This document shows positions 47,953 through 61,364 of a stretch of 64,000 nt of DNA, piece by piece. A model generated the notes under the pieces. The model saw only the letters and a list, made by a program, of their open reading frames with translations, ran no database searches and was not told the DNA's origin. A program made the translations under genes and the position numbers. The DNA lies in IMG/VR virus record IMGVR_UViG_3300010389_000001, positions 62,001 to 126,000 of that record. One strand, written 5' to 3'. The stretch's first letter is position 1. Every line of letters begins with the position of its first letter.

Positions 47953-49246
47953 AGAAATAGCAAAATTCATTAAGAATGAAAAAGAGATAGCTGAGTATAA
48001 GCTATCTCTTTTGCGTGCATCAAAAAGGAGAGGCTATACAAATAGGCTTATCTCAATGGAGGAAGAGTATATAGAGTTTGACTTTGAGTCTATAGGGTTT
48101 GATACGATCGAAGAGGCGAGAGAAGCTCTAATCTTATTTCGTATCGACAGACCGATGTTCAATAATAAATATTCAACAGTAGATGATGGCAAAAGAGCAT
48201 CCGCCTCTCAAGTCGAAAATCTGTTTAAAAGAATATCCTTTTTAAGCAATTCTTATAAGACGCTCATAGAAGACAGGATCTCCTCTGATGAGATCGACTC
48301 CTATGTGGCTGCAATCGTAGGAAAAAGCAGTGGGGCAATATTCGAAAAAGCAAAGGCCAGGATACAGATAATTATTTGCTCGTTATCTAGGCATATATTT
48401 GTTGAGACAAAAAAGCTTCGGGAAAAAATAGGCGACACACTGACAAGGGGGCAGTCCGTAGAGCTAAAGAAGATTGTAGACTCGCTCTATGAAAGTTCAA
48501 TTTATGAAGTTTTTAAATATTATAATGATTCTATAGATCAAACTTATAGTCTTCTAAATTCAAATAAAAATAGCGATTTTATTTTATCTATTTATCCGCT
48601 CACTAATCTGCTCGATAAGTATTCAGAAGATAGCTTCAAGATAGAAAGAATGCTAAACGTGGATAAGAACTTTTTCTCAAAGACGGGTAGGCCTATATCA
48701 AGAAAGTCTACGGAAAGGGGGTGGGGCATAAAGACTCCTCTGAACCGTGTAGGCAATGAAACGACAGAAGTTCTATACCGAACCATTTATTGTAACGACG
48801 ACACTTGCCTGGACAAGATTCTTGAGAGGGGGTTTTACAATGCAAGAATATCCGAAGGAGAATATGTAAAGGCGATATCGACAAAGCCGGTCTGGAACAT
48901 ATTGGCAGATAATCTAGATGATTCTTTGGCTTTAAAAATGTCTGATCTTTTAGGGATTAATCTTGAGTCGATATCCGCATCGAAGCTGTCTGATCCAGAG
49001 AAGATTAAGGCAATAAACTTATCTAATAATGTAATCGATATTGACTCAAGTCGCAGTAAAATACTTATTGCAGCAACAAGATCAGAGGCCTCAAAGCTTA
49101 ATGAGGCCAAAAGTTACATAGAGTTACTAATAAAAGAATTAAAAGAAGAATACGATAATGAATTCTGTGGTGGCAAGAATACTGTTGATAAACAGGGCTT
49201 CAGAAGAGATAAGATAAAAGAGATTATTGGGAGCATAGTGAGATGA
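47945..49246 (+). CDS. Hypothetical protein
   Basis: 433-aa ORF coupled to both neighbours. Confidence 0.65.
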   Translation: MNEEIAKFIKNEKEIAEYKLSLLRASKRRGYTNRLISMEEEYIEFDFESIGFDTIEEAREALILFRIDRPMFNNKYSTVDDGKRASASQVENLFKRISFLSNSYKTLIEDRISSDEIDSYVAAIVGKSSGAIFEKAKARIQIIICSLSRHIFVETKKLREKIGDTLTRGQSVELKKIVDSLYESSIYEVFKYYNDSIDQTYSLLNSNKNSDFILSIYPLTNLLDKYSEDSFKIERMLNVDKNFFSKTGRPISRKSTERGWGIKTPLNRVGNETTEVLYRTIYCNDDTCLDKILERGFYNARISEGEYVKAISTKPVWNILADNLDDSLALKMSDLLGINLESISASKLSDPEKIKAINLSNNVIDIDSSRSKILIAATRSEASKLNEAKSYIELLIKELKEEYDNEFCGGKNTVDKQGFRRDKIKEIIGSIVR

Positions 49247-52200
49247 TAAGCTCAAAGGAAGCGTTAAGCATATTTAAGATTTTTAAGTCACTGAAGTGGC
49301 TTAGAGAGAACTCCTCCAATTACATGGAGGTGATTAATCCGGCCGTAGAGATAGTTAGTATAGCGGGGTTTGACGAAGGAAGCACGTATAGCGAAGACTC
49401 TGAGGGTCTTGAGCCATATGGCGGTAACTTTGGCCCGATGTTCCCAGACGACTTTATTAATTCTTCAGAAGTTATTTTTTTTGACGATAGATCATCTGCG
49501 GAAGACTTTGGGGCTGTTTCAAGCCGATGTAACGAAATCATAGAGAAGCTAAAAGAAGTCGATGATGTAATCAAAAAGATTCGTGACCTTGGATTAGATG
49601 CAGAATTAAATGTAGATGAGATATCGCAAAAGAAAGAAGAATTAGATAAAAACTGCAAGCTCCTGAAGGAAAACCTTGAGGCTCTTGGTGAGGAGGGCAG
49701 GGAAAGATTTTCCATAGTGCTGGAGGATGGCGCAAATGCTGTTATGGATGAGGTTTTTGAGGCTCCGCAATATGCCACTCAGATAATTGCAGAAACATTC
49801 AAGAAGAATAAGCCCGAAGCTCCAGTCGAGCCATCCGAGCCCGCTGAATCCGAAAAGACTCCCGAGGAAGTAGCGGCGGAAACTGAGGCTACGGAGGTTG
49901 CAGAGGGTGAAGAGGGTGCGGCTCCTCCGCAGGAAGATATTGAGGCGGCATATAGCAAAACATTGCTTGAGAGCTATCGCTCCCTGGATACAGAGGAATA
50001 TAAAAGACTATTCTCTCCTAGAAAGAAGGGGCCGCCTACATTTCCAAATCTAGATGGAAGCTCCGTTTCGGACCCTACAACAAGAGATAAATACATGTCT
50101 TTTGTGGCCAAAAAAAACGAGAAAGATTCTGTCTATGAAAAAATCAAAGGCATAGAGGAACGCGGAAAATATTCTGAAGAATACGGCGGAAAAAGCTTTC
50201 TGGAGTTTGATGGGTCCATATTTTACGGCAAGTTTGAAAACATGGAAGATGCCATAGGCATAAATATAATAGAAAGCTCGATTGGCACTGATCCACTAAT
50301 TGAGGTAGATGACGAAAAGGTGGCTGCGACACTAAAGGTCGTAACAGACGAGATGGAGCGAATTATAGAACTTTCAAAAAAGCTTTACCCACTGACAGGC
50401 AAAGTTGCTAGGGAGGTTGCTGAGGACATAAACATTCGCAGAAGAATTTTGATTAACGATATTGAATATCTATTCGCCTCGATAAACCAAAGAGATAAAG
50501 AGGTCGCATCTTACATGGCGGAAATGTATCCTAAATCAGACATTTTGACAAAAGTTTTAATAAAGCATACGTTTATGGATCCAGAAATAGAATCGGGCAG
50601 CCTTTTGCGAGATCCTGAATTAGAGAGGTCATTCATAAAAGCCGTCTTATCTGTGGTTAGGCCAGAACTTGTTAGCAATATCCTGCATAAAAAGAAAGAG
50701 CGAGACTTTCGTGAAAAGTATGGTGTCAGATGGGTCGACGATGGCTTACGGTCCGAATATAATGACGTTGTAGCAAAAAATGCTATCAAAAAAATTAAAT
50801 CTTCCTTTTACGACGAAAGGATAGACTTGGTCACAAAAGACTTATACGATCTTAGCGCGAGCTACCTTGTGGCTGCCACAAGTGATCGTAAGCTCGACAA
50901 GGCTATGGTAAAAAAAGTACTAAAACTCTGCTCTGTCTGTGGCAAAGAAGTATGGTCCGACAATTACCTCAGAAGACGCAATGTTAAGGCGAGCGAAAAA
51001 GCTTCCAATAATCTGCAAGTGGAGCAATATTCGCTTTTTAGAGATATTGGATTCCTCGAAGGAAGATCGCCAATGATAACATTGGAGGAGCTGATTTCTC
51101 ATGGCAGATTTGTTCTATCGAGCGAGGATTCAGAGAGCATAAGGGAAGCTCTAGACTCTATGGGTCTTGGTGCTAGGATATCTGCCGGCAAAACGTGGGA
51201 AGAAATAGAACAAGATTATTATAGCGGCAATTATGCCAAAAATATAGAATCTATAATGCGCAAAAATTACGCCCTCAAAAGTCTTGGAGGCAAAAAACTG
51301 CCGGCGACCTTTAATCTTGCGGTCTCAAGATTTCGGTGCCCATTTGGCTCAGAGAAGGAAGCTGGCGCGACCGAAGCTGGGCAGTCTGCGCAATTTGACA
51401 CAAAGAGTGCTCTAAGAATTATTGAGAGAGCCAACAAATCTTTATATGCCAAGGATAAAGTAAAAGATAAAATTCTTGCAATACAAAATAAAGTTTTGGA
51501 GAGCGGCGCAAGCCATGACGAAGCAGTAAAAGCTGTTTCCAAAGTTATAGATGAGCTTAAATGGCTTGAGGACAAGTCTAAAACGGCAGCCAAGGCAGCG
51601 CTAAAGGGTCAGGTATCTTTTCGGCAGGGTGGCGCTAAAGATGAGTGGAATTGCGGCTTAGGATATAACGATCAAGCCCAAAGGGGCCTTGAGCTATACC
51701 TTGAGGAAGCAGAAGGCACTGGAGCTATAAGCAAAGAGCAAAAGGAAAAAATCATTGCATTATCTAGCGAGCAAAGCTTGGGCGGCTTCAAATTCTCTGC
51801 GAGATCCTTTGTATGCCCAACAGAAATAGACGCCTCAGGAGAGGATGCTCTAGACCTAATTGATAAGCACAAAATGCTTGTAGTTCCGATACGCTCTAAG
51901 GTCGGCCAAACAGAGCACCCGGCAACAGCTGCCGTACTAGGAGGGGGAAAGATACTTAGCTTACGCTGCGGAGCCCCCACTAGCATATCTCAATTTGATA
52001 GAATGAAGTTTTACGAGAACATCAAGGATCTTGTAGATGAGAAAAATCATGATGATTATATGAACTTAGTCAATTCTATGATCGAGCTTGGGGTAGACGT
52101 TACTGATATTCTACCATTTACGATGCTTAAGCATGCTAATAACGAAGATCTTACAGACGTGACTGCTGGATTGCTGCTTTCTGATGGAGGTATATCTGAT

Positions 52201-55200
52201 GCCGCTATTTTCAGAATGAACAAAATCTCTGGTCTGCTAAAGCAGGCTATGGCCACCACGGGTACAGGCGCCCAACGCGGCCAGCTAAATGTTTCCAAAT
52301 ATTTTGATTATATACAGAATATAGAATTAAACTGTATTCACGGGCACAGCTTTTCTCCAGGGCAGTCTGTGGCGTTCACCAAAGAGTTTATAGATATAAA
52401 CTTCGATCTAAAAACCAAGGAGCAGATAGTTAGAAGAAATATATTGGCAATGTCTGGAGAGGAGCAGCTGAAGGGAATTCTGGAGCTTAGCGGTAGCCCC
52501 ATTATCAGGAGGCTAAATATTGGCGAGAAAGCAAGGCCGTATTCTTCATATAAATATGGTGACAGAATAGCTGACATAGGATTTGGCGGACCAGACGCTG
52601 AAGGTAGCGATCTTATATATGCAGATAAAGCCGTAGGGAAAAACATATCGATGTATCCTGGGGCAGATGAAATTTATACAATTCCTAATAAAGCGAGCAT
52701 AATAAGGACAAAGGAAAGTACAGTGACTCTCCGCTCGGAATACGGCAGAGGCAAGTCGTCTTCGACAGTCGGCAAATCTGATGATAAAGGCATTACGGAC
52801 ATCATGAATACCGTCAAAGATCAGGGCCCCTCTCCTGATGCCTTACTAGAATCCTCCGGCGGGCAGGGACTAAGTAAAGCGTCGATAATGGCAGGTATGA
52901 ACAGTGCGAAACTTCAGGAAACTATTATTCTAGCTTTAATTCAGAGCAATATAACCACAATTCAGGAGCTTTTACTTACCGCAACATCCACAAGCAAGGA
53001 GGATGTATCGTTTTTCTCGCCTCGTCTGGCAGGCAAAACAATATCAGAAAAGATCGGCTCAAAAGAGTTTTTGGATGACCTAAGGGGCCTAATTGATTTT
53101 GTATTCAGAGAAAAGCTTTCCGAAGATGCCCTGGTAATGCTGGGTGAAAAGGGTCAGGCCGAGGATGGACTAAAAGAGAGCATCTACAGCAGTGTTAAGG
53201 AAAGAATTATTCGAGACATAGGGTCTCAGGAGGTTGCTTATGCATATGCCTCTAGAAAAGTTCTGCTTAATTATTTTTACGAAGTAATCATAAGTAGTTT
53301 TAAAAATCTCGCAGGAAGCCTGGGTAACGAAGATTTTTCGGTATCCGTCGAAGCTATAGGCTCTCTGACGCCCGAAGAGCTGTCGAATAAACTTCCAAGC
53401 TTTTTCTCACTAAAATCTATCGAGGAGTTCGAGGTTTCAGATTCAGTATCAGATTTTGCAAAAATTCTGACAGACCCCAAGGGAAGTCCCGACCAGATGC
53501 CGAAGCCTATGAAGGCAAAGGTAATGAACATAACAGAGCTATGGTTTGGAAAGCAGCTGGTTATTTCGGCTACTGCCTTTTATATGGCAGAGAGCTTGCT
53601 AAATATATATGATAGATTCTTCAATAAAGAATCTGTAGATTACCTTGGGTATAACCCGCTTAGAAATTTTCAGCCAAAAAGCGTTAACGATATAATCAAG
53701 ATAACTATAAGCGATGCTTTAATGGGAATCTCTGAAGAGCCCAGCAGGCTTTTGGGCATTTATGAGGAGATGATGGAAAAGGTTGCATCTGGGGAAGATA
53801 TGGGCCAGCTGGCAGGGTCAGCAGCCACACTTGTTCGCAAAATGAATGATGCGGCTAATGAGCTTGGAAGGGCTCATCACGGCGCTGAGTACGCCTGTAG
53901 AACGGAGAAGTATCAGGGGCTAGGCCTAGAATACATTAAAGCCGTGTATGCAGAGGCCCTAAGCATCGAAGATTCGAGCGACCCTCATGTTGAAAAAATT
54001 CTAAACAATGTTTTGACAAATACTAGAAATATTAGCGTATCGCTATCCGGTGAAGATGAAAAGTATTCAGGTTATTACGCTAAATTTGAAAATGCGCACA
54101 CACTACTCCCTCCAACTATGCAGAGGGTTCTGGAAGTAGATGAGAAAAAGACTAAGCTGACTAAACCAGTATATGTTATTTACGCCCCTGGCCTAAATGA
54201 TGATGAGCCATACCCCTTTGGAATAAGGCCGTCACTGGTCAAGGGTCGCCACTATGCATTTTTGGTTCACAATGATGACGCACAGTATTTTGATCAAATT
54301 ACTTCACTTGAAAGCAGCAAAAGCTTCGCTGAGGAACATGAGGCATTTTATCAAAATGGATGGAGGCTATATCTTGGCGGTAGAGAAGCCCAGGAAATTT
54401 ATAAAAATAAAGATATATCGACAAAGGGTAAAAGGGTTGAAAGCAGCAGTGTATCACTGATAGATCATCCTGGCACATATGTTGTATATGATGAGTTTGG
54501 AGATAGGTCTGGATATGCAAATGACACTGTAGGCTTAAGAACCGATGTAGGCTTTCATATTGGAACATACGGAGCGTGGACGAAAAAATCATCTTACGGT
54601 TCAGCATCTAAGTTTTACCCTCCCATGCCCAATGCTGACTGCGGAGTTGGCATTCCTATTCCAATAAGTATTCCGGCAGAGCTTGACAATTCCGAAAAAA
54701 AGGTGAGGGGCTCGACTATTAACATATCTATGTGTGATATTCCTGTCGATCTACCTACTGAGAGCGGAGAATTCTTGCGGGCAAATATTTCAGACCTTAT
54801 GATGAGAAGGCCCCCCGAGCTGGCTAGCAAGATGCTTTTCGAAATAGAAAAGGAGCACGCAAATTTCAAGAAGGAATATGGAGCCCTTTTTAGAAGCGGT
54901 GCCGATGAATCTGAGCTTGAAAAGTATAGAACTACCTATATTATGGGCGCCCGGCGCAAGATGGATCGATACAGAAGCCTGCCACTAAATGTGATTATGG
55001 ACTCTAACACAAGAACTCATATGAATGCCAAGGGAGGCTTCTCTCTGGCTCTAGGCGCTTATGCTCCCTTGGTTGACCCAATAACGGCCAATCGCTTCTT
55101 GACTCAAGAGTGCTTTTCTCAAGAATATGCAGGTCATCGCATATTTGGTGACGAAGTTGATCCTGAGTTGGCGAAAAGCTCCATAAGATCCTTCCTTGTT

Positions 55201-56217
55201 TCAGCATTCGGGTATGATAGACTGGCTGACATGATGAATGAGCACGACACTGCCGTTAAAACTGGCCGAAAAGTGGGCAACAAATATTCTATTTCCGGAG
55301 AGCCTATTGATGGCGAAGACCTCCTGTTTCCCGCCCAAATGCTCAATCTTCGCGGAGAAGGAGGCAAGGGGATATCTAAAGACGCGTTATATGGAGCCGG
55401 TGCGACTACTGACTTTGTATTGGATGAGGCAACGGGCAAGGTCATCCAGAAGGTTGTTGGCATCAAGGAGTTTGATAAGCTAAAGAGCATCTTGGGCCCG
55501 AAGCAATTTGCAATGCTCGCTCCATCTATATTCCCCATATTCGAAGACCCTGGAGACTTCTTTGGAGATGATTACGTTAAAAGAAATATGGACAAACTAA
55601 CCGGAGTTACCACTGCAAAGAGAGACATCGAAAAGCTTTTGGAGGCAATAAAAGCATCCTTTAATAAAAAGGGACAGGGAACAAGAATATCTGATAGATA
55701 CATTGAATCCTTCGACAAGACTTTGCCAGGCTGGAGATATCACACTCCGAAATTTAAACATCTTGGCGTAACGGGCTCTGGAGATATTGGGGGCGTAGAT
55801 TTTGAGGAGCCAAAGCTTGTTCTAGAAGGCCCTATATTTGCTCGCAGCAAAGAAGGGCCTCCTGGCAAAGAGAATATTCTGAGCTTTAGAGACTTGCTTC
55901 CGGTAGGAATCCAAAAGAGAATAACTCGTAAGCTGGGGATTTACGATTTTCATCATGCCTTAAACAAGTTCTTCTCCAAAAAATTCGAAGGAATAAAGGA
56001 TTACATCGAAGAATATAAGGAGACCTTAATAACAGCAGAGACATATGGCTTTGATAAAGAGTCCTTATTTGACCCGGCAGCCCTATTTAAGAAGACCTCT
56101 TCTATGATTATTTGCTCTGGCTTCATTAAGAAATCTGAAAAATACAAGACAGATATTTTCCAGGAGATTAGCATAAGGGACGAGGCAATTATCCGCCTCC
56201 TCGACAGGATCAACTAA
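49243..56217 (+). CDS. Giant 2324-aa hypothetical protein
   Basis: Uninterrupted ORF; scattered Cys knuckles; no catalytic motif recognised. Confidence 0.75.
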   Translation: MISSKEALSIFKIFKSLKWLRENSSNYMEVINPAVEIVSIAGFDEGSTYSEDSEGLEPYGGNFGPMFPDDFINSSEVIFFDDRSSAEDFGAVSSRCNEIIEKLKEVDDVIKKIRDLGLDAELNVDEISQKKEELDKNCKLLKENLEALGEEGRERFSIVLEDGANAVMDEVFEAPQYATQIIAETFKKNKPEAPVEPSEPAESEKTPEEVAAETEATEVAEGEEGAAPPQEDIEAAYSKTLLESYRSLDTEEYKRLFSPRKKGPPTFPNLDGSSVSDPTTRDKYMSFVAKKNEKDSVYEKIKGIEERGKYSEEYGGKSFLEFDGSIFYGKFENMEDAIGINIIESSIGTDPLIEVDDEKVAATLKVVTDEMERIIELSKKLYPLTGKVAREVAEDINIRRRILINDIEYLFASINQRDKEVASYMAEMYPKSDILTKVLIKHTFMDPEIESGSLLRDPELERSFIKAVLSVVRPELVSNILHKKKERDFREKYGVRWVDDGLRSEYNDVVAKNAIKKIKSSFYDERIDLVTKDLYDLSASYLVAATSDRKLDKAMVKKVLKLCSVCGKEVWSDNYLRRRNVKASEKASNNLQVEQYSLFRDIGFLEGRSPMITLEELISHGRFVLSSEDSESIREALDSMGLGARISAGKTWEEIEQDYYSGNYAKNIESIMRKNYALKSLGGKKLPATFNLAVSRFRCPFGSEKEAGATEAGQSAQFDTKSALRIIERANKSLYAKDKVKDKILAIQNKVLESGASHDEAVKAVSKVIDELKWLEDKSKTAAKAALKGQVSFRQGGAKDEWNCGLGYNDQAQRGLELYLEEAEGTGAISKEQKEKIIALSSEQSLGGFKFSARSFVCPTEIDASGEDALDLIDKHKMLVVPIRSKVGQTEHPATAAVLGGGKILSLRCGAPTSISQFDRMKFYENIKDLVDEKNHDDYMNLVNSMIELGVDVTDILPFTMLKHANNEDLTDVTAGLLLSDGGISDAAIFRMNKISGLLKQAMATTGTGAQRGQLNVSKYFDYIQNIELNCIHGHSFSPGQSVAFTKEFIDINFDLKTKEQIVRRNILAMSGEEQLKGILELSGSPIIRRLNIGEKARPYSSYKYGDRIADIGFGGPDAEGSDLIYADKAVGKNISMYPGADEIYTIPNKASIIRTKESTVTLRSEYGRGKSSSTVGKSDDKGITDIMNTVKDQGPSPDALLESSGGQGLSKASIMAGMNSAKLQETIILALIQSNITTIQELLLTATSTSKEDVSFFSPRLAGKTISEKIGSKEFLDDLRGLIDFVFREKLSEDALVMLGEKGQAEDGLKESIYSSVKERIIRDIGSQEVAYAYASRKVLLNYFYEVIISSFKNLAGSLGNEDFSVSVEAIGSLTPEELSNKLPSFFSLKSIEEFEVSDSVSDFAKILTDPKGSPDQMPKPMKAKVMNITELWFGKQLVISATAFYMAESLLNIYDRFFNKESVDYLGYNPLRNFQPKSVNDIIKITISDALMGISEEPSRLLGIYEEMMEKVASGEDMGQLAGSAATLVRKMNDAANELGRAHHGAEYACRTEKYQGLGLEYIKAVYAEALSIEDSSDPHVEKILNNVLTNTRNISVSLSGEDEKYSGYYAKFENAHTLLPPTMQRVLEVDEKKTKLTKPVYVIYAPGLNDDEPYPFGIRPSLVKGRHYAFLVHNDDAQYFDQITSLESSKSFAEEHEAFYQNGWRLYLGGREAQEIYKNKDISTKGKRVESSSVSLIDHPGTYVVYDEFGDRSGYANDTVGLRTDVGFHIGTYGAWTKKSSYGSASKFYPPMPNADCGVGIPIPISIPAELDNSEKKVRGSTINISMCDIPVDLPTESGEFLRANISDLMMRRPPELASKMLFEIEKEHANFKKEYGALFRSGADESELEKYRTTYIMGARRKMDRYRSLPLNVIMDSNTRTHMNAKGGFSLALGAYAPLVDPITANRFLTQECFSQEYAGHRIFGDEVDPELAKSSIRSFLVSAFGYDRLADMMNEHDTAVKTGRKVGNKYSISGEPIDGEDLLFPAQMLNLRGEGGKGISKDALYGAGATTDFVLDEATGKVIQKVVGIKEFDKLKSILGPKQFAMLAPSIFPIFEDPGDFFGDDYVKRNMDKLTGVTTAKRDIEKLLEAIKASFNKKGQGTRISDRYIESFDKTLPGWRYHTPKFKHLGVTGSGDIGGVDFEEPKLVLEGPIFARSKEGPPGKENILSFRDLLPVGIQKRITRKLGIYDFHHALNKFFSKKFEGIKDYIEEYKETLITAETYGFDKESLFDPAALFKKTSSMIICSGFIKKSEKYKTDIFQEISIRDEAIIRLLDRIN

Positions 56218-56592: not shown

Positions 56593-59256
56593 ATGCCAAA
56601 AGGTCCGTTCATATCGCTTCATAACCACACCGAGCTAGGCTCACCTCTCGATGGAATGAATGATGTAAAGGATTTATTCGTAAGAGCAAAAGAGGTGGAT
56701 CATCCGGCTGTAGCGGTTACAGACCATGGTACGATGACCGCAATGTATGATGCTTATCTCGCATCACAGGAAACTGGCGTAAAGTTAATCCCAGGAATGG
56801 AGGCTTATTTTGCTGATGATCTAGAGAATAAAAAGAGCCACCACCTTGTTTTGCTTGCGCAAAACCAAAAGGGTTACGAGAATATTCTTACCCTAAATTA
56901 CAAAGCTTTCCAAAATCAAGTCGCCGGATACATGGGAAAGAAGACCCCCAGAATTACATGGGAGCATATTCGGGATCACAATGAGGGGGTTATAGCTCTC
57001 ACGGCATGTTCAAATGGCCTTATCGCAAAAACCTTAATTACAGAGCAAGATGAAGCAAATGCCCTAAGGTATATCTCTATGTTTAAGTCTATTTTTGGAG
57101 ATAGATTTTTTCTTGAACTTCAGCCTCATGCTCTACATGCTGTGGGTAAAAATGGAAAGGAAGTAAATCAGCAAAAGCTGAATCGCTCTCTTCTAAGAAT
57201 ATCAAGAGATTATGATATCCCCTATGTAATTACTTGTGATGCTCACTATAGAGACAAAGAACATGCAAAGTATCACGACTTTATGCTTGCAATCAAGGAT
57301 AAAAAGGCCGTAGATGATCCGGATCGCTTTAGATACGGCGTTCAAGATATGTACCTCAAAACACATGAAGAAGTTATAGACTTCTTTGGACGTGATATTG
57401 CTGAAGTCGGCATGCAAAATACAATAAAGATCATGAATTCATGCCAAGATCCGCATTACATTGAGCCACAAGGGCCTCGGCTTCCCGCATTTCCCGTTCA
57501 AGATCAGGAGGATTATTCGGAGTTCTCAGATTGGAAGGAGAAGAGTCGGTCCACTATTCCAGAGGATCAGTCTTATCTTCGCTACAAATGTATCGAGGGC
57601 TTTAAAGAGAAGCTGTCACACTTATCCGAAGAAGATAGGGAACTTTATTGGGATCGGGTAAAGATGGAACTTTCAGTTTTGGAGGACAAGAACTTTTCAT
57701 CTTATATGCTGATCGTTTCCGATTATATTAACTGGGCCAAACAAAGAATGCCAGTTGGAGACGGAAGAGGGAGTTCGGCCGGATCCCTTGTCGCTTACCT
57801 AACAGGAATTACCGGCGTGGACCCAATTGAATACGATTTGATCTTCGAAAGGTTTCACAATAATCAAAAGAAGTCTTTCCCAGATATTGATACTGATTTT
57901 TCAGATCCTTCTCTGGTAAAAGAATACATTAAAGAAAAGTATGGCGAAGATAGAGTTGCGTCTATTTCAAACTGGAGCACTCTCTCTCCAAAGGTCGTAA
58001 TTAAAGATGTTGCCAGAAGCCTACGGCTTGGTGGCGATAAAACTGCTGCATTTAAGATTGCAAATCACATCACATCAATTATGCCCGATGCAAAGACCCT
58101 TGAGCAGGCGATGAGCGACAGCTCTCAGTTTGATGCTTACATGAAACAGTATCCAGAGCTTTATGAGTATGGAGAAAAGCTGCAGAATCTAACCAGAAAC
58201 TGGTCTGTACATGCCGCAGGAATGGTTATTGGAGAAGAACCGCTTCATAAGACCGTCCCGCTTAGAATCGATGATGAAGGCGGCGTCGTAACTCAGTGGG
58301 AAAAGAATCGCTGTGAAACAAATGGTCTAATTAAAATGGACCTTCTCGGCCTAAAGACCCTCACTGTTATCGATAATACTTTTAAGCTTATACAGTCTTC
58401 AACCGGAGAGAGCTTATCAACTGATGATATCGATCTTAACGACCAAGAAGTTTATAAGATGCTAGGTCGCGGAGAAACATCTGGTGTATTTCAGCTTGAG
58501 TCATCTCTTACTCCATTCTGCATAAAGCTAAAGCCAAACTGTATTGAGGATATCTCTGCCATTAATGCAATCGGAAGGCCCTCCTGTCTTCCGGAGGAAA
58601 GAAAGAAGTATGCAAAAAGAAGACTTGGCCTTGAGCCTACAAAGTATGACCATCCCAAGCTAGAAAGAGCGCTAAAGAAAACTTATGGAATTCTTGTTTA
58701 CGAAGAGCAGGCCATGTTTATTGCGCAAGACTGTGCCGGCTGGGACCTAAACCAGGCTGATTCTCTAAGAAAAATCAGCAAGCTAAAGGGCAAGGATCCA
58801 GATCTTGTGCTTAAGACCGAAGCAAACTTTGTTAAAGATTGCATGTCGCACTCCGGAATGGACTATAAAACTGCATGCCTAGTTTGGAAGCGGTATATCG
58901 AGGTTTTAGGAGGCTATGCGTTCAATAAGTCATTGCACTTTTCTGAGAAAGTAAGTATAATAAGAAACGGGGAGCCTTTAACCCTTGATATTCAAGACGT
59001 TAAAAAAGGCGACCTTGTACCTTCGAGAGACGAGAAAACAGGTGAAGACCTTCTGATTGAAGTAAAAGGCAATCATTACCACGGAAAACTGCCCGTACTG
59101 AAAGTTACGCTAGAAACTGGAGAAACTGTAACATGCACAAAGAATCACAAATTCAGAACCACAACCGGGGAAATGCTGCCCCTATGGCTAATCCTGGAGG
59201 CAAACATGGAGATCGTTGTTTCTGCGGAAAAGAATCAAAAACAAAGGGAGGCCTAG
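56593..59256 (+). CDS. dnaE: DNA polymerase III alpha N-extein (aa 1-779) fused to N-intein
   Basis: PHP motifs (LHNHT, TDHG, DAHY), GRGSSAGSL, FERF, PDIDTDF, HAAG, KMDLLGL, GVFQLES, then GYAFNK followed by the intein. Confidence 0.96.
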   Translation: MPKGPFISLHNHTELGSPLDGMNDVKDLFVRAKEVDHPAVAVTDHGTMTAMYDAYLASQETGVKLIPGMEAYFADDLENKKSHHLVLLAQNQKGYENILTLNYKAFQNQVAGYMGKKTPRITWEHIRDHNEGVIALTACSNGLIAKTLITEQDEANALRYISMFKSIFGDRFFLELQPHALHAVGKNGKEVNQQKLNRSLLRISRDYDIPYVITCDAHYRDKEHAKYHDFMLAIKDKKAVDDPDRFRYGVQDMYLKTHEEVIDFFGRDIAEVGMQNTIKIMNSCQDPHYIEPQGPRLPAFPVQDQEDYSEFSDWKEKSRSTIPEDQSYLRYKCIEGFKEKLSHLSEEDRELYWDRVKMELSVLEDKNFSSYMLIVSDYINWAKQRMPVGDGRGSSAGSLVAYLTGITGVDPIEYDLIFERFHNNQKKSFPDIDTDFSDPSLVKEYIKEKYGEDRVASISNWSTLSPKVVIKDVARSLRLGGDKTAAFKIANHITSIMPDAKTLEQAMSDSSQFDAYMKQYPELYEYGEKLQNLTRNWSVHAAGMVIGEEPLHKTVPLRIDDEGGVVTQWEKNRCETNGLIKMDLLGLKTLTVIDNTFKLIQSSTGESLSTDDIDLNDQEVYKMLGRGETSGVFQLESSLTPFCIKLKPNCIEDISAINAIGRPSCLPEERKKYAKRRLGLEPTKYDHPKLERALKKTYGILVYEEQAMFIAQDCAGWDLNQADSLRKISKLKGKDPDLVLKTEANFVKDCMSHSGMDYKTACLVWKRYIEVLGGYAFNKSLHFSEKVSIIRNGEPLTLDIQDVKKGDLVPSRDEKTGEDLLIEVKGNHYHGKLPVLKVTLETGETVTCTKNHKFRTTTGEMLPLWLILEANMEIVVSAEKNQKQREA
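58930..59256 (+). mobile_element. Split intein, N-fragment (108 aa, Ser1)
   Basis: Block A SLHFSEKV, block B VTCTKNHKF (TxxH). Confidence 0.88.
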
Positions 59257-60215
59257 GCAAGCATAAGGCAAAGTGTGTTGTTTACATTAAAAAAGCTTTG
59301 GAGATCGGTGAAATTATCCAATGCTCCCTTTGCGATCATAAGGCCAAGACTCTCAGGCGACATATAGAAAAAGAACATAAGGACATCTCCGTTGATCAGT
59401 ATGTTGAGTTGTACGGAAGCTATATGGCTCCAATTACAAGAGAAAAGAAGAAAAGGGCCGCCAAGCAAAATGGCTCTTGGTTTGCAAAGCTTTCTGCCGA
59501 TGAGAAGGCCGAAGTAAGGGCTGGCTGGATTGAGAATGGAAAGAAAATTAGCGATTCTATTATGAGCAATCCCGAAGAAAGAAAAAGAAGAGCTTCTATG
59601 CTGAAGGAAATGTGGGATGACCCGGATAAGGCGGCCATTTTCCGGGAGAATCAGAGCGAGACGGCAAAAAAGACATCCGCAAGAGCTGATGTTCAAGCCG
59701 CAAGGGCGGAAAGGTTAAAAAACTGGAGAGACAACAACCCCGAAGATTTTTATAATAAATGCACAAGAGCCATGCATAAAACGTGGACTTCCAAGCCTGA
59801 GAAAAGACTTCGGGCTTTCGCCCAATCAATAAACCCTTTATTTAAGGGAAATCAGCAGGTTAACTCGAACAAGCATTTTTTTACAAACAAAACCTGCAGA
59901 AAGCAAGTCGACCTTATTGACAAAGAGAATAAAATAATCATAGAGTTAGACGGCCCGCACCATTTCGATCCGATCTTTGGCGATGAAATCCTAAAGATTA
60001 ATAAGAAAAAGGATAAAGAGCTAGACAAGTTCTGTTTAGATGGCGGCTATCTTCTAATAAGAGTCTCGCATACGGAATACGATTACAGAAAGTCTTCCAA
60101 CGACTTTAGTACACGTACTTTAAATAAGGTCAGGGAAATACTGGACGCTGGCGCGCCTGGCGTTTATTATCTTGGCGAAGAGTACCTCGAAAAAAATATG
60201 CTTCCAAAGGAGTAG
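59133..60215 (+). CDS. Free-standing Vsr/DUF559-like homing endonuclease (start uncertain, possibly 59184)
   Basis: N-terminal Zn fingers, basic helical linker, SKPE...VD...IELDGPHHF...KD...GYLLIRV. Confidence 0.82.
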   Translation: MHKESQIQNHNRGNAAPMANPGGKHGDRCFCGKESKTKGGLGKHKAKCVVYIKKALEIGEIIQCSLCDHKAKTLRRHIEKEHKDISVDQYVELYGSYMAPITREKKKRAAKQNGSWFAKLSADEKAEVRAGWIENGKKISDSIMSNPEERKRRASMLKEMWDDPDKAAIFRENQSETAKKTSARADVQAARAERLKNWRDNNPEDFYNKCTRAMHKTWTSKPEKRLRAFAQSINPLFKGNQQVNSNKHFFTNKTCRKQVDLIDKENKIIIELDGPHHFDPIFGDEILKINKKKDKELDKFCLDGGYLLIRVSHTEYDYRKSSNDFSTRTLNKVREILDAGAPGVYYLGEEYLEKNMLPKE

Positions 60216-60218
60216 CTC

Positions 60219-60329
60219 GTGGCTAAAATCATTTCTGCAGATAATGTAGGCGAAGAACATACTTATGATCTTGAGGTTGATCACCCTGATCATCAGTATT
60301 ATTTGGCGAACGGAATTTTAACTTCTAAT
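60219..60329 (+). mobile_element. Split intein, C-fragment (37 aa)
   Basis: Blocks F/G TYDLEV..HQYYLANGILTSN followed by Ser+1. Confidence 0.9.
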
Positions 60330-61364
60330 TCGCACTCTATTTCTTACTCACACATTTCTTTTTATACCGCGTGGCTTCGATGTCATTATCCAACGCAGTT
60401 TATGTGTGCTTTGCTAAACTCTGAAGATCCGAACTCCGATAAGGCGCAGGAATATCTTTCGGAATGCAAAAGCATGGGCATTAACATTGTCGCTCCCAAC
60501 GTAAACGACTCTGTTGGAAATTACAAAGTTCTTGAAAATATGGTTATTTCAACCGGGCTGTCTGCAATCAAGGGGGTTGGAGATAAGGCTATTGAATCGA
60601 TTGTAAATATGCAGCCATATAATTCTTTTATAGAGTTTGTATCAACAAATGACAGTCGCACGGTTGGAAAAACAGTTATTCAATCCCTGGCAAAAGCGGG
60701 CGCCTTAGACTTTACGGGTTTAACGAGAATGGATATGCATGATAACTATCAGAAGTATCGATCCAAGGCAAAGAACGCTATAAAGAAAGAGGTTGAAAAG
60801 GATATTCTTGCGGCCCATCCCGAAATAAAGAAGATAACAAAAGATGTGAGGGATCGCTATTTTGAGCAATTTGATATTCTTCCGGATTCGGAAAGATTCA
60901 ACAATATCGTTTCTGCCCTAACTTATACTCCGTCAGAAGATGAATGGGACAGAAAGGATATCTTGCTGTACGAGAGAGAAGTCCTTGGACGCTCTATATC
61001 CGGCAGCCTTCATGAAGTTTTCTCAAGCTTCTTTTCTGGAGGGCCTTTTGTTACGCCGCTAAAGAATATCGAAGAGCAAAGCAATGGTGCCAGAATAAAA
61101 ATCGAGGCTATAATTAAGACGAAGATTAAAGAATTTAAGATTAAGAACGGCAAAAATGTTGGAAGAAAGTTCGCCAAGTACTTGGTGGAAGATGTTAATG
61201 GCGATACATGCGGCTTAACCCTTTGGGCCGATGACTATGATAAATATAAATCCGTTCTAAAAGAAGGTCTGCCTATTAAGGCCATATGCAAGGTAAACGA
61301 ATATATGGGCCAGAAAGACCTTGCGCTATCATCACTTGAAAGAGTTTATGGGAGAAAGATATGA
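60219..61364 (+). CDS. dnaE: C-intein fused to DNA polymerase III alpha C-extein
   Basis: AAGGAG RBS; SHSISY...YPTQFMCALL, GLSAIKGVG, LAKAGALD, EREVLG, C-terminal OB fold. Confidence 0.95.
   Translation: MAKIISADNVGEEHTYDLEVDHPDHQYYLANGILTSNSHSISYSHISFYTAWLRCHYPTQFMCALLNSEDPNSDKAQEYLSECKSMGINIVAPNVNDSVGNYKVLENMVISTGLSAIKGVGDKAIESIVNMQPYNSFIEFVSTNDSRTVGKTVIQSLAKAGALDFTGLTRMDMHDNYQKYRSKAKNAIKKEVEKDILAAHPEIKKITKDVRDRYFEQFDILPDSERFNNIVSALTYTPSEDEWDRKDILLYEREVLGRSISGSLHEVFSSFFSGGPFVTPLKNIEEQSNGARIKIEAIIKTKIKEFKIKNGKNVGRKFAKYLVEDVNGDTCGLTLWADDYDKYKSVLKEGLPIKAICKVNEYMGQKDLALSSLERVYGRKI

Follow-up and report, generated by a model that had tools for sequence, protein, structure and literature searches.

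The 64,000-nucleotide stretch of DNA analysed here (the window), bases 62001-126000 of the 232,533-base IMG/VR record IMGVR_UViG_3300010389_000001 of an uncultured marine jumbo phage, contains a fractured dnaE gene, and the polymerase encoded by its two pieces is, with a probability of roughly 0.85, reconstituted by a trans-splicing split intein whose halves are separated in the genome by a Vsr-like homing endonuclease gene. The locus consists of three consecutive open reading frames (ORFs) on the plus strand, i.e. dnaE-N, the endonuclease gene and dnaE-C (Table 1), and the fracture of dnaE was confirmed. A preliminary description of the locus had proposed the same arrangement, which is borne out by the continuity of the DnaE profile, intein-less and contiguous alleles, matches to the HINT and Vsr folds, purifying selection and predicted docking of the intein halves.

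The 3′ part of dnaE-N reads ...LGGYAFNK followed by SLHFSEKV...VTCTKNHKFRTTTGEMLPLW...QREA and the stop codon, and the dnaE-C product opens with MAKIISADNVGEEHTYDLEVDHPDHQYYLANGILTSN followed by SHSISYSH.... The PHROG 405 profile of phage DnaE covers dnaE-N up to position 794 and dnaE-C from position 793, and thus the exteins abut exactly and the 108 + 37 extra residues of the N-terminal (IntN) and C-terminal (IntC) intein halves represent an insertion. On the basis of Pfam, the N-extein carries the PHP, DNA polymerase III alpha core and finger domains, and HhH and OB domains are found in the C-extein; together the 779 and 344 amino acids (aa) of the exteins make up a rebuilt DnaE of 1123 aa. 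A single dnaE was counted in the 232-kb record. The ends and lengths first reported for this locus (GYAFNK/SLHFSEKV at the end of the N-gene, an IntN of 108 aa, an IntC of 37 aa ending in TSN/SHSISY, and the 1123-aa DnaE; a slash marks the splice junction) were all read again from the sequence, as were Ser1 and Ser+1, the two serine residues of the junctions.

The position of the insertion was compared among related phages in a series of 39 viral contigs with dnaE-C relatives and several with dnaE-N relatives, in which the distance from the end of the N-extein to the start of the C-extein was measured. Twenty-four loci were intein-less, with a distance of 0 and the uninterrupted reading ...GGYAFNK SHSISYS..., the closest of them (L011) having an extein identity of about 91%. 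Three loci (L007, L008, L033) contained a contiguous mini-intein of 140-147 aa as an open insert of 420-441 nucleotides (nt), and in another three (L027, L028, L047) the intein was split without an endonuclease gene, with 498-557 nt between the exteins. The halves were separated by a short ORF in two loci (L009, with Cys1, and L030), and by a full-length ORF in ten loci (L002, L003/L010, L004/L005, L016, L031, L036, L044, L045, L048) in addition to the window. Other ORFs were identified in the same intein loop of L009 (3231-3716, 161 aa), L030 (5491-5910, 139 aa) and L045 (4016-6001, 661 aa); these returned no Pfam match, and they may be decayed or different endonucleases.

The junction is fixed by the intein-less alleles, and the nucleophile at position 1 is accordingly the Ser directly after FNK. 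Block B (T-x-x-H) is present in IntN as TKNH, aligned to TKDH of Npu DnaE, and in the alignment of the family (A2) its His is invariant and the Thr is kept as Thr or Ser. In IntC, block F reads YDLEV..DH and block G reads TSN, followed by Ser+1. The terminal Asn and Ser+1 of the IntC end (...YDLEVDHPDHQYYLANGILTSN/S) were kept in all 18 intein-bearing loci, as was the motif DHQ[YF]YL.(N/D/S)G.LTSN/SH, including loci with exteins only 35-40% identical to those of the window. Against solved DnaE inteins, phmmer searches of the PDB with IntN returned 7qil (5.6e-8), Npu DnaE (~1e-5) and gp41-1 (4.5e-4). IntC aligns from its first to its last residue with the IntC of Npu DnaE, MIKIATRKYLGKQNVYDIGVERDHNFALKNGFIASN, which places the split at the canonical position. 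The penultimate Ser had been presented as a peculiarity; the residue is there, but it is not unusual, as in the end-to-end alignment the IntC of Npu DnaE, the best-studied fast split intein, ends likewise, in ...FIASN.

The HINT fold was assessed with a structure model of a contiguous relative (P0003, residues 910-1054), which is 63% identical and was modelled with a predicted local distance difference test score (pLDDT) of 92.9. The Npu DnaE intein was the top PDB match of this model, with template modelling (TM) scores of 0.82/0.85, and the top 50 PDB matches were all inteins or related BIL domains. Docking was predicted in three runs for the two halves from the window, to each of which 8 adjoining extein residues were attached. 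The resulting interface score (ipSAE) of 0.67, compared with 0.00 for the best of three controls, supports a likeness of the predicted complex to split inteins rather than activity; in calibration, 51 of 78 solved complexes attained the mark set for this score, as did 2 of 108 mismatched pairs. One non-catalytic Cys is found in IntN (VTCTKNH). The net charge of IntC is -6, that of Npu IntC being +3, and on the 'capture and collapse' model this difference would make cross-reaction with the Npu halves unlikely, an electrostatic argument which is incomplete; the reversed IntC charge is the only point favouring orthogonality to Npu.

The exteins are conserved at a ratio of nonsynonymous to synonymous substitution rates (dN/dS) of 0.03-0.05 in comparison to L002 and L003 (N-extein 0.04 against L002), and the corresponding values are 0.14-0.17 for IntN and 0.11-0.22 for IntC, which indicates purifying selection on both intein halves. 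Taken together with the kept IntC motif, the presence of only one dnaE and an insertion site within the most conserved motif of the polymerase, these ratios speak for a polymerase that depends on splicing.

The second component of the locus, the endonuclease gene, most likely starts at 59184, as in the database gene call, and not after the IntN stop codon: L002, L003 and L004, as well as the more distant homologues P0163, P0166 and P0168, likewise have an ATG or GTG here, followed by the CxCGK...H...C knuckle. Starting there, the gene shares 73 nt with the final 24 codons of IntN, which it reads in a different frame. Near its N-terminus the product contains a Ros/MucR-type zinc finger, and Pfam ROS_MUCR was found in 12 of the 21 members of the endonuclease family (best E-value 2.8e-10); moreover, the profile of the 21-member alignment (A1) matches the Ros structure (PDB 2jsp) at 5.1e-6. 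The C-terminal part was assigned by its fold. The AlphaFold model (pLDDT 86.8) returned E. coli Vsr (1cw0_A) as the top Foldseek match with probability 1.0, and VIA-align likewise ranked 1cw0_A first (Z 12.2, root mean square deviation 2.9 Å over 120 residues, model residues 202-340). D243, E254, D256, H260, D277 and R293 are invariant in the 21 aligned homologues, and the JGI annotation of one homologue is that of a very-short-patch-repair endonuclease. Sequence searches of the PDB with phmmer and with the family profile returned the Ros zinc finger and no solved nuclease, the Vsr relationship being seen by structure comparison only, and I-Bth0305I was absent from the lists of fold matches. 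No further copies of the endonuclease family were found in the genome.

The 3′ end of the endonuclease gene is in frame with dnaE-C, separated from it by TAG and one codon (60213-60221). The overlap with IntN, the shared frame with dnaE-C, and a putative ribosome-binding site inside the last endonuclease codons suggest that translation of dnaE-C may be coupled to that of the endonuclease gene. A scan for sigma-70-like promoters upstream of the endonuclease start remained at background level without enrichment. At 60142-60166 on the plus strand, some 50 nt short of dnaE-C and still within the 3′ end of the endonuclease gene, lies a GC-rich hairpin (TGGACGCTGGCGCGCCTGGCGTTTA) which resembles a terminator and continues into a T-rich tail.

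In DNA comparisons, the intein-endonuclease element and its host gene differ in history. Against L003, the element is mostly 84-91% identical (78% in one comparison window), and the C-extein is mostly 71-77% identical, rising to 84% at its 3′ end, with the step in identity at 60330. Synonymous divergence (dS) is likewise lower in the intein (0.35-0.48) than in the exteins (0.6-2.5), and the higher identity and lower dS thus point to a history of the element which is different from, and more recent than, that of the host gene. The endonuclease gene itself is mosaic: against L002 its 5′ two-thirds are 95-97% identical, and the nuclease core (ca. 59720-60170) is only 43-57% identical, when the zinc-finger part and the C-terminal tail on either side of the core stay at 95-97%. 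The core is replaced in a contig of run X4 (depth 190) as well, where 347 nt stand instead of 59765-60119, a pattern resembling a domain swap between homing endonucleases.

To examine the distribution of the intein, IntN was compared exhaustively by phmmer with 1.84 billion representative proteins. Of these, 197 matched at E≤1e-3 and 74 of them at E≤1e-10, which together with the PDB match at 5.6e-8 puts the identification far beyond chance. Nearly all top matches follow the DnaE motif GY(G/A)FN(K/R). Among the 113 fetched proteins with this motif, residue 1 of the intein is Ser in 63, Cys in 35 and Thr in 15; IntN ends the protein in 78, as in a split intein, and the protein continues in 35. 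Inteins with Thr1 are unusual. Thr1 relatives at FNK/ include P0015, P0019, P0023, P0040, P0041, P0052 and P0104, and some of these are contiguous mini-inteins with intact TSN/SH ends. The cyanobacterial type (KFAEY/CL..., P0122) was reached only at about 6e-6, compared with 1e-10 to 1e-33 for the FNK/S family. A tblastn search of IntN against 50,697 GenBank phage records found no homologue, megablast of the locus against GenBank phages gave no DNA-level match, and no GenBank phage has a DnaE which exceeds 37% identity to the present one; near-identical sequence is present in marine, sediment and lagoon metagenomes. A literature search for an intein at FNKSH, or for a split DnaE intein of a jumbo phage, retrieved nothing relevant. 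The intein is therefore a member of a large family, so far known from metagenomes only, which resides at FNK/SHS of DnaE.

The cyanobacterial insertion site had been placed four residues upstream of the present one, correctly, as KFAEY/C is seen in P0122. The insertion at FNK/SHS, four residues downstream, and the Ser1/Ser+1 pair mark the FNK/S family as related to the cyanobacterial DnaE inteins but not their allele. The intein had also been called independent, which holds for its site and family, but its homology to the cyanobacterial DnaE inteins is clear. Cyanobacterial inteins being the best matches among solved structures and sharing the split position, a common origin is possible.

On the reading proposed here, a mini-intein sits in the conserved GY(A/G)FNK/SHS motif of a DNA polymerase III alpha-like polymerase, and a free-standing endonuclease gene would have landed in the loop which usually carries intein-borne endonuclease domains, splitting the intein gene. 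Three proteins would then be made from one strand, i.e. DnaE(1-779)-IntN, the endonuclease, and IntC-DnaE(780-1123). IntN and IntC would associate into the HINT fold and carry out class-1 trans-splicing with oxygen nucleophiles, in which an N-to-O acyl shift at Ser1 would be followed by attack of Ser+1 and formation of a branched ester, cyclisation of the terminal Asn, and an O-to-N shift. The product would be a 1123-aa polymerase with a native FNK-SHS peptide bond. The endonuclease, with its zinc-finger DNA-binding part and Vsr-fold nuclease, would most likely cut the element-free dnaE of co-infecting phages, and repair of the cut allele would copy the intein and the endonuclease gene in as one unit.

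Several points weigh against this reading. The anatomy of the locus, the homologies, the allelic series, the purifying selection and the separate history of the element are observed, whereas splicing, the activity of the endonuclease and its target are what we infer from them. The docking score may partly reflect memory of solved split-intein complexes, and with a second IntN lobe that is close to neutral (+1) there is no obvious electrostatic capture partner for the -6 IntC. Neither the 5′ hairpin nor the 27-51-nt spacer of Dassa et al. is present, the gene overlapping IntN instead, and folding upstream of the endonuclease start was no better than that of shuffled sequences (z +1.2). Moreover, the record is about 68% complete by the CheckV estimate, which leaves room for a second polymerase, and the run data which cross the junctions are assembled contigs. 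Since the window itself comes from a metagenome assembly, and the endonuclease gene shares its frame with dnaE-C across a single stop codon, the three genes might in principle be an assembly or frameshift artefact of a contiguous intein with an in-frame endonuclease domain. This we regard as highly improbable: dnaE-N and the endonuclease gene overlap in different frames, this arrangement is found again, each time with separate stops and starts, in L002, L003/L010, L004, L016, L031, L036 and L044, and contigs of the independent runs X2 and X3 (95-99% identical) cross the extein/IntN junction, the IntN stop and endonuclease start, and the endonuclease stop/IntC junction. Recoding of stop codons, or a read-through fusion, was ruled out, as all three stops end long ORFs in the window (TAA 11, TAG 10, TGA 8) and reading through the TAG at 59254 gives only a short frame with more stops. 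Improbable as well, although less so than an artefact, is that the intein halves hold the two DnaE pieces together non-covalently and do not splice them, or that the gene is broken and another polymerase is used. In Aeromonas phage, an NrdA gene fractured by an endonuclease is known to be rescued non-covalently (PMC3045599), and the incompleteness of the genome record would accommodate a replacement. However, all catalytic intein positions are kept across the family even where the exteins have diverged to 35-40% identity, inteins and exteins are under strong purifying selection, the record holds no other dnaE, and the break interrupts the most conserved motif of the polymerase, which could hardly accommodate 145 additional residues there.

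A different target of the endonuclease is a live alternative which we still consider unlikely: the enzyme might cut mini-intein alleles lacking an endonuclease gene (of the L007, L008 and L033 type) and not intein-less dnaE, in which case the endonuclease gene alone would be mobile and the intein a fixed resident. Such contiguous alleles do occur in related phages, the nuclease core has been exchanged alone between near-identical elements, and the different ORFs of L009, L030 and L045 occupy the same loop. This would correspond to the 'gene-breaking' step as in Dassa et al., but in the comparison with L003 the drop in identity is clearest at 60330, the start of the C-extein, and there is none at the endonuclease/IntC junction, which favours movement of the composite of intein and endonuclease gene into intein-less alleles. 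The lower dS of the intein than of the exteins also fits the two moving together, and intein-less alleles, as the commonest state, are the most abundant potential targets. L011 for the intein-less state, and L007 for the mini-intein lacking an endonuclease, are candidate substrates of the enzyme.

Relatives of the window share a conserved gene order of a giant ORF, a 93-aa ORF and dnaE, with Cpn60 and RecA further downstream. The 2324-aa ORF directly upstream of dnaE in the window (49243-56217, plus strand) has syntenic counterparts of 2010-2051 aa in L003 and L004, for which no Pfam hit is on record. A second intein site, empty in the window, was identified within the N-extein: at PVGxxRG/SSAGS a split intein is present in L003 (4554-8590), L004 (5192-8572) and L008 (4326-8676), and a contiguous or LAGLIDADG-bearing intein in P0003 and P0009. 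The dnaE of L003 and L004 is thus in three pieces. A contig of run X2, 95-99% identical to the window, has a 1393-nt insert at this site (57755/57776), and hence presence and absence vary among near-identical phages.

Table 1. Features of the fractured dnaE locus; positions are those of the window.
Feature	Position	Strand	Description	Basis
dnaE-N	56593-59256	+	887 aa = 779-aa extein + 108-aa IntN; TAG stop	
dnaE N-extein	56593..58929	+	779 aa, ends ...LGGYAFNK	Pfam PF02811, PF07733, PF17657; PHROG 405 positions 43-794
Second intein site, empty in the window	57769..57774, junction 57771/57772	+	PVGDGRG/SSAGS	Occupied in relatives
IntN	58930..59256	+	108 aa + TAG; Ser1 SLHFSEKV, block B TKNH	phmmer against PDB, relatives
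Free-standing homing endonuclease gene	59184..60215	+	343 aa	Database gene call P0160; ORF open from ATG 59133
Ros/MucR-type C2H2 zinc-finger DNA-binding module	59262..59417	+	aa 27-78	Pfam, family profile
Vsr-fold nuclease domain	59787..60203	+	aa 202-340	AlphaFold model, structure comparison
Putative ribosome-binding site of dnaE-C	60207..60212	+	AAGGAG, inside last endonuclease codons, 6 nt before GTG	Sequence reading
dnaE-C	60219-61364	+	GTG start; 37-aa IntC then 344-aa extein	
IntC	60219..60329	+	37 aa, blocks F and G ...TYDLEVDHPDHQYYLANGILTSN; penultimate Ser, terminal Asn	End-to-end alignment with Npu DnaE IntC 4lx3_B
dnaE C-extein	60330..61364	+	344 aa + TGA, from Ser+1 (SHSISYSH...)	Pfam HHH_6 5.9e-18; PHROG 405 positions 793-1055

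Beyond the window, the RecA-like gene of the same phage (record positions ca. 127686-129245, about 1.7 kb past the 3′ end of the window) contains a contiguous mini-intein with Cys1 and Thr+1, ...GDPS/CVDPF...VNHN/TSPGG... (L050 502-2061), and the genome thus holds at least two inteins. In Rossellomorea phage phiT1 (PV767480.1, 10590-12981), dnaE is annotated as two 'DNA polymerase III subunit alpha' coding sequences and a hypothetical protein, and this may be another fractured dnaE.

The locus is a clean case, seen as a whole, of a selfish endonuclease breaking an essential replication gene, with a split intein which would repair the break at the protein level. With empty, intact-intein, split and endonuclease-lost states found at one codon, models of gene-breaking and of the homing cycle become testable with natural alleles, and the Cys1 and Thr1 sister alleles constitute a natural experiment on the choice of nucleophile. 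As a ligation tool that would be orthogonal and insensitive to redox conditions, the Ser1/Ser+1 pair with its strongly acidic IntC is a reasonable candidate. These lines can be joined into a wider proposal, which we put forward only tentatively and hold to be rather doubtful as a whole: every stage of gene-breaking (empty, mini-intein, split with endonuclease, endonuclease lost) would be preserved at one dnaE codon, with free switching of Ser, Cys and Thr at position 1; the intein would be an efficient mesophilic natural split intein without a catalytic Cys, orthogonal to Npu by its reversed IntC charge; and the FNK/S family could be the phage-borne sister, perhaps even the source, of the cyanobacterial split DnaE intein.

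In comparison to known systems, the Npu/Ssp DnaE split intein shares with the present one the host protein and the split position, provides its best relatives among solved structures, and has an IntC of 36-37 aa which can be aligned over its full length, down to the penultimate Ser of Npu. It differs in its site (KFAEY/CFNK, four residues upstream), its Cys1 and Cys+1, the location of its halves at distant loci without an endonuclease, and the charge of IntC (+3 in Npu versus -6). The endonuclease resembles the Vsr-like enzymes of I-Bth0305I type (PMC3239194; Dassa et al. 2009) in its modelled C-terminal Vsr fold, an invariant set of acidic and His residues which may correspond to their conserved Glu/Asp/His/Asp set, and an N-terminal DNA-binding extension, and in residing in mobile elements of phage replication and repair genes, whereas its DNA-binding part is a Ros/MucR-type zinc finger and its sequence matches no solved nuclease. 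Natural split inteins without a catalytic Cys are described as rare and sought as tools; in the reports cited here they are confined to PolB, namely Aes123 PolB1, CP21 PolB1, LCGC14 PolB2 and GOM-OPS-1 PolB2 (PMC11923092, PMC12707363). Phage origin, a natural split at the position of the endonuclease, and Ser1 combined with Ser or Thr at +1 are common to these and the present intein, but their host is a family B polymerase and they are distant (Aes123 was 25th in the fold list), and one non-catalytic Cys remains in the IntN described here.

The closest precedent is the set of fractured genes of Dassa, London, Stoddard and Pietrokovski (2009; PMC2677866), which includes the loci DnaE-1, DnaE-2 and DnaE-3, so that dnaE cases with split inteins and Vsr-like endonucleases, to which the preliminary description had also referred as known, were on record already in 2009. 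The loci of that report have the same colinear order on one strand (host N-part with IntN, free-standing endonuclease gene, IntC with host C-part), come from marine phage-like metagenomic DNA, and include a dnaE host, a Vsr-like endonuclease (DnaE-2) and an allele without endonuclease (gp41-7). The text gives Cys1 as the N-terminal catalytic residue, as opposed to Ser1 here. It also describes the spacer and, in 15 of 16 5′ regions, a hairpin upstream of the endonuclease start, and such a spacer and hairpin, or a late-promoter box, are common accessory features and not defining ones; in the present locus their place is taken by the overlap with IntN, and no significant hairpin was found. The dnaE loci in that text are read-length fragments, and the present one is a whole locus in a 232-kb genome with an allelic series. 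The locus is therefore a new member of the 'fractured gene' class, in which dnaE was already represented, and one that is complete and seen in its whole genomic context. Its additions to this class are modest: a pair of Ser nucleophiles, a series of natural alleles, and a position 1 which varies among Ser, Cys and Thr.

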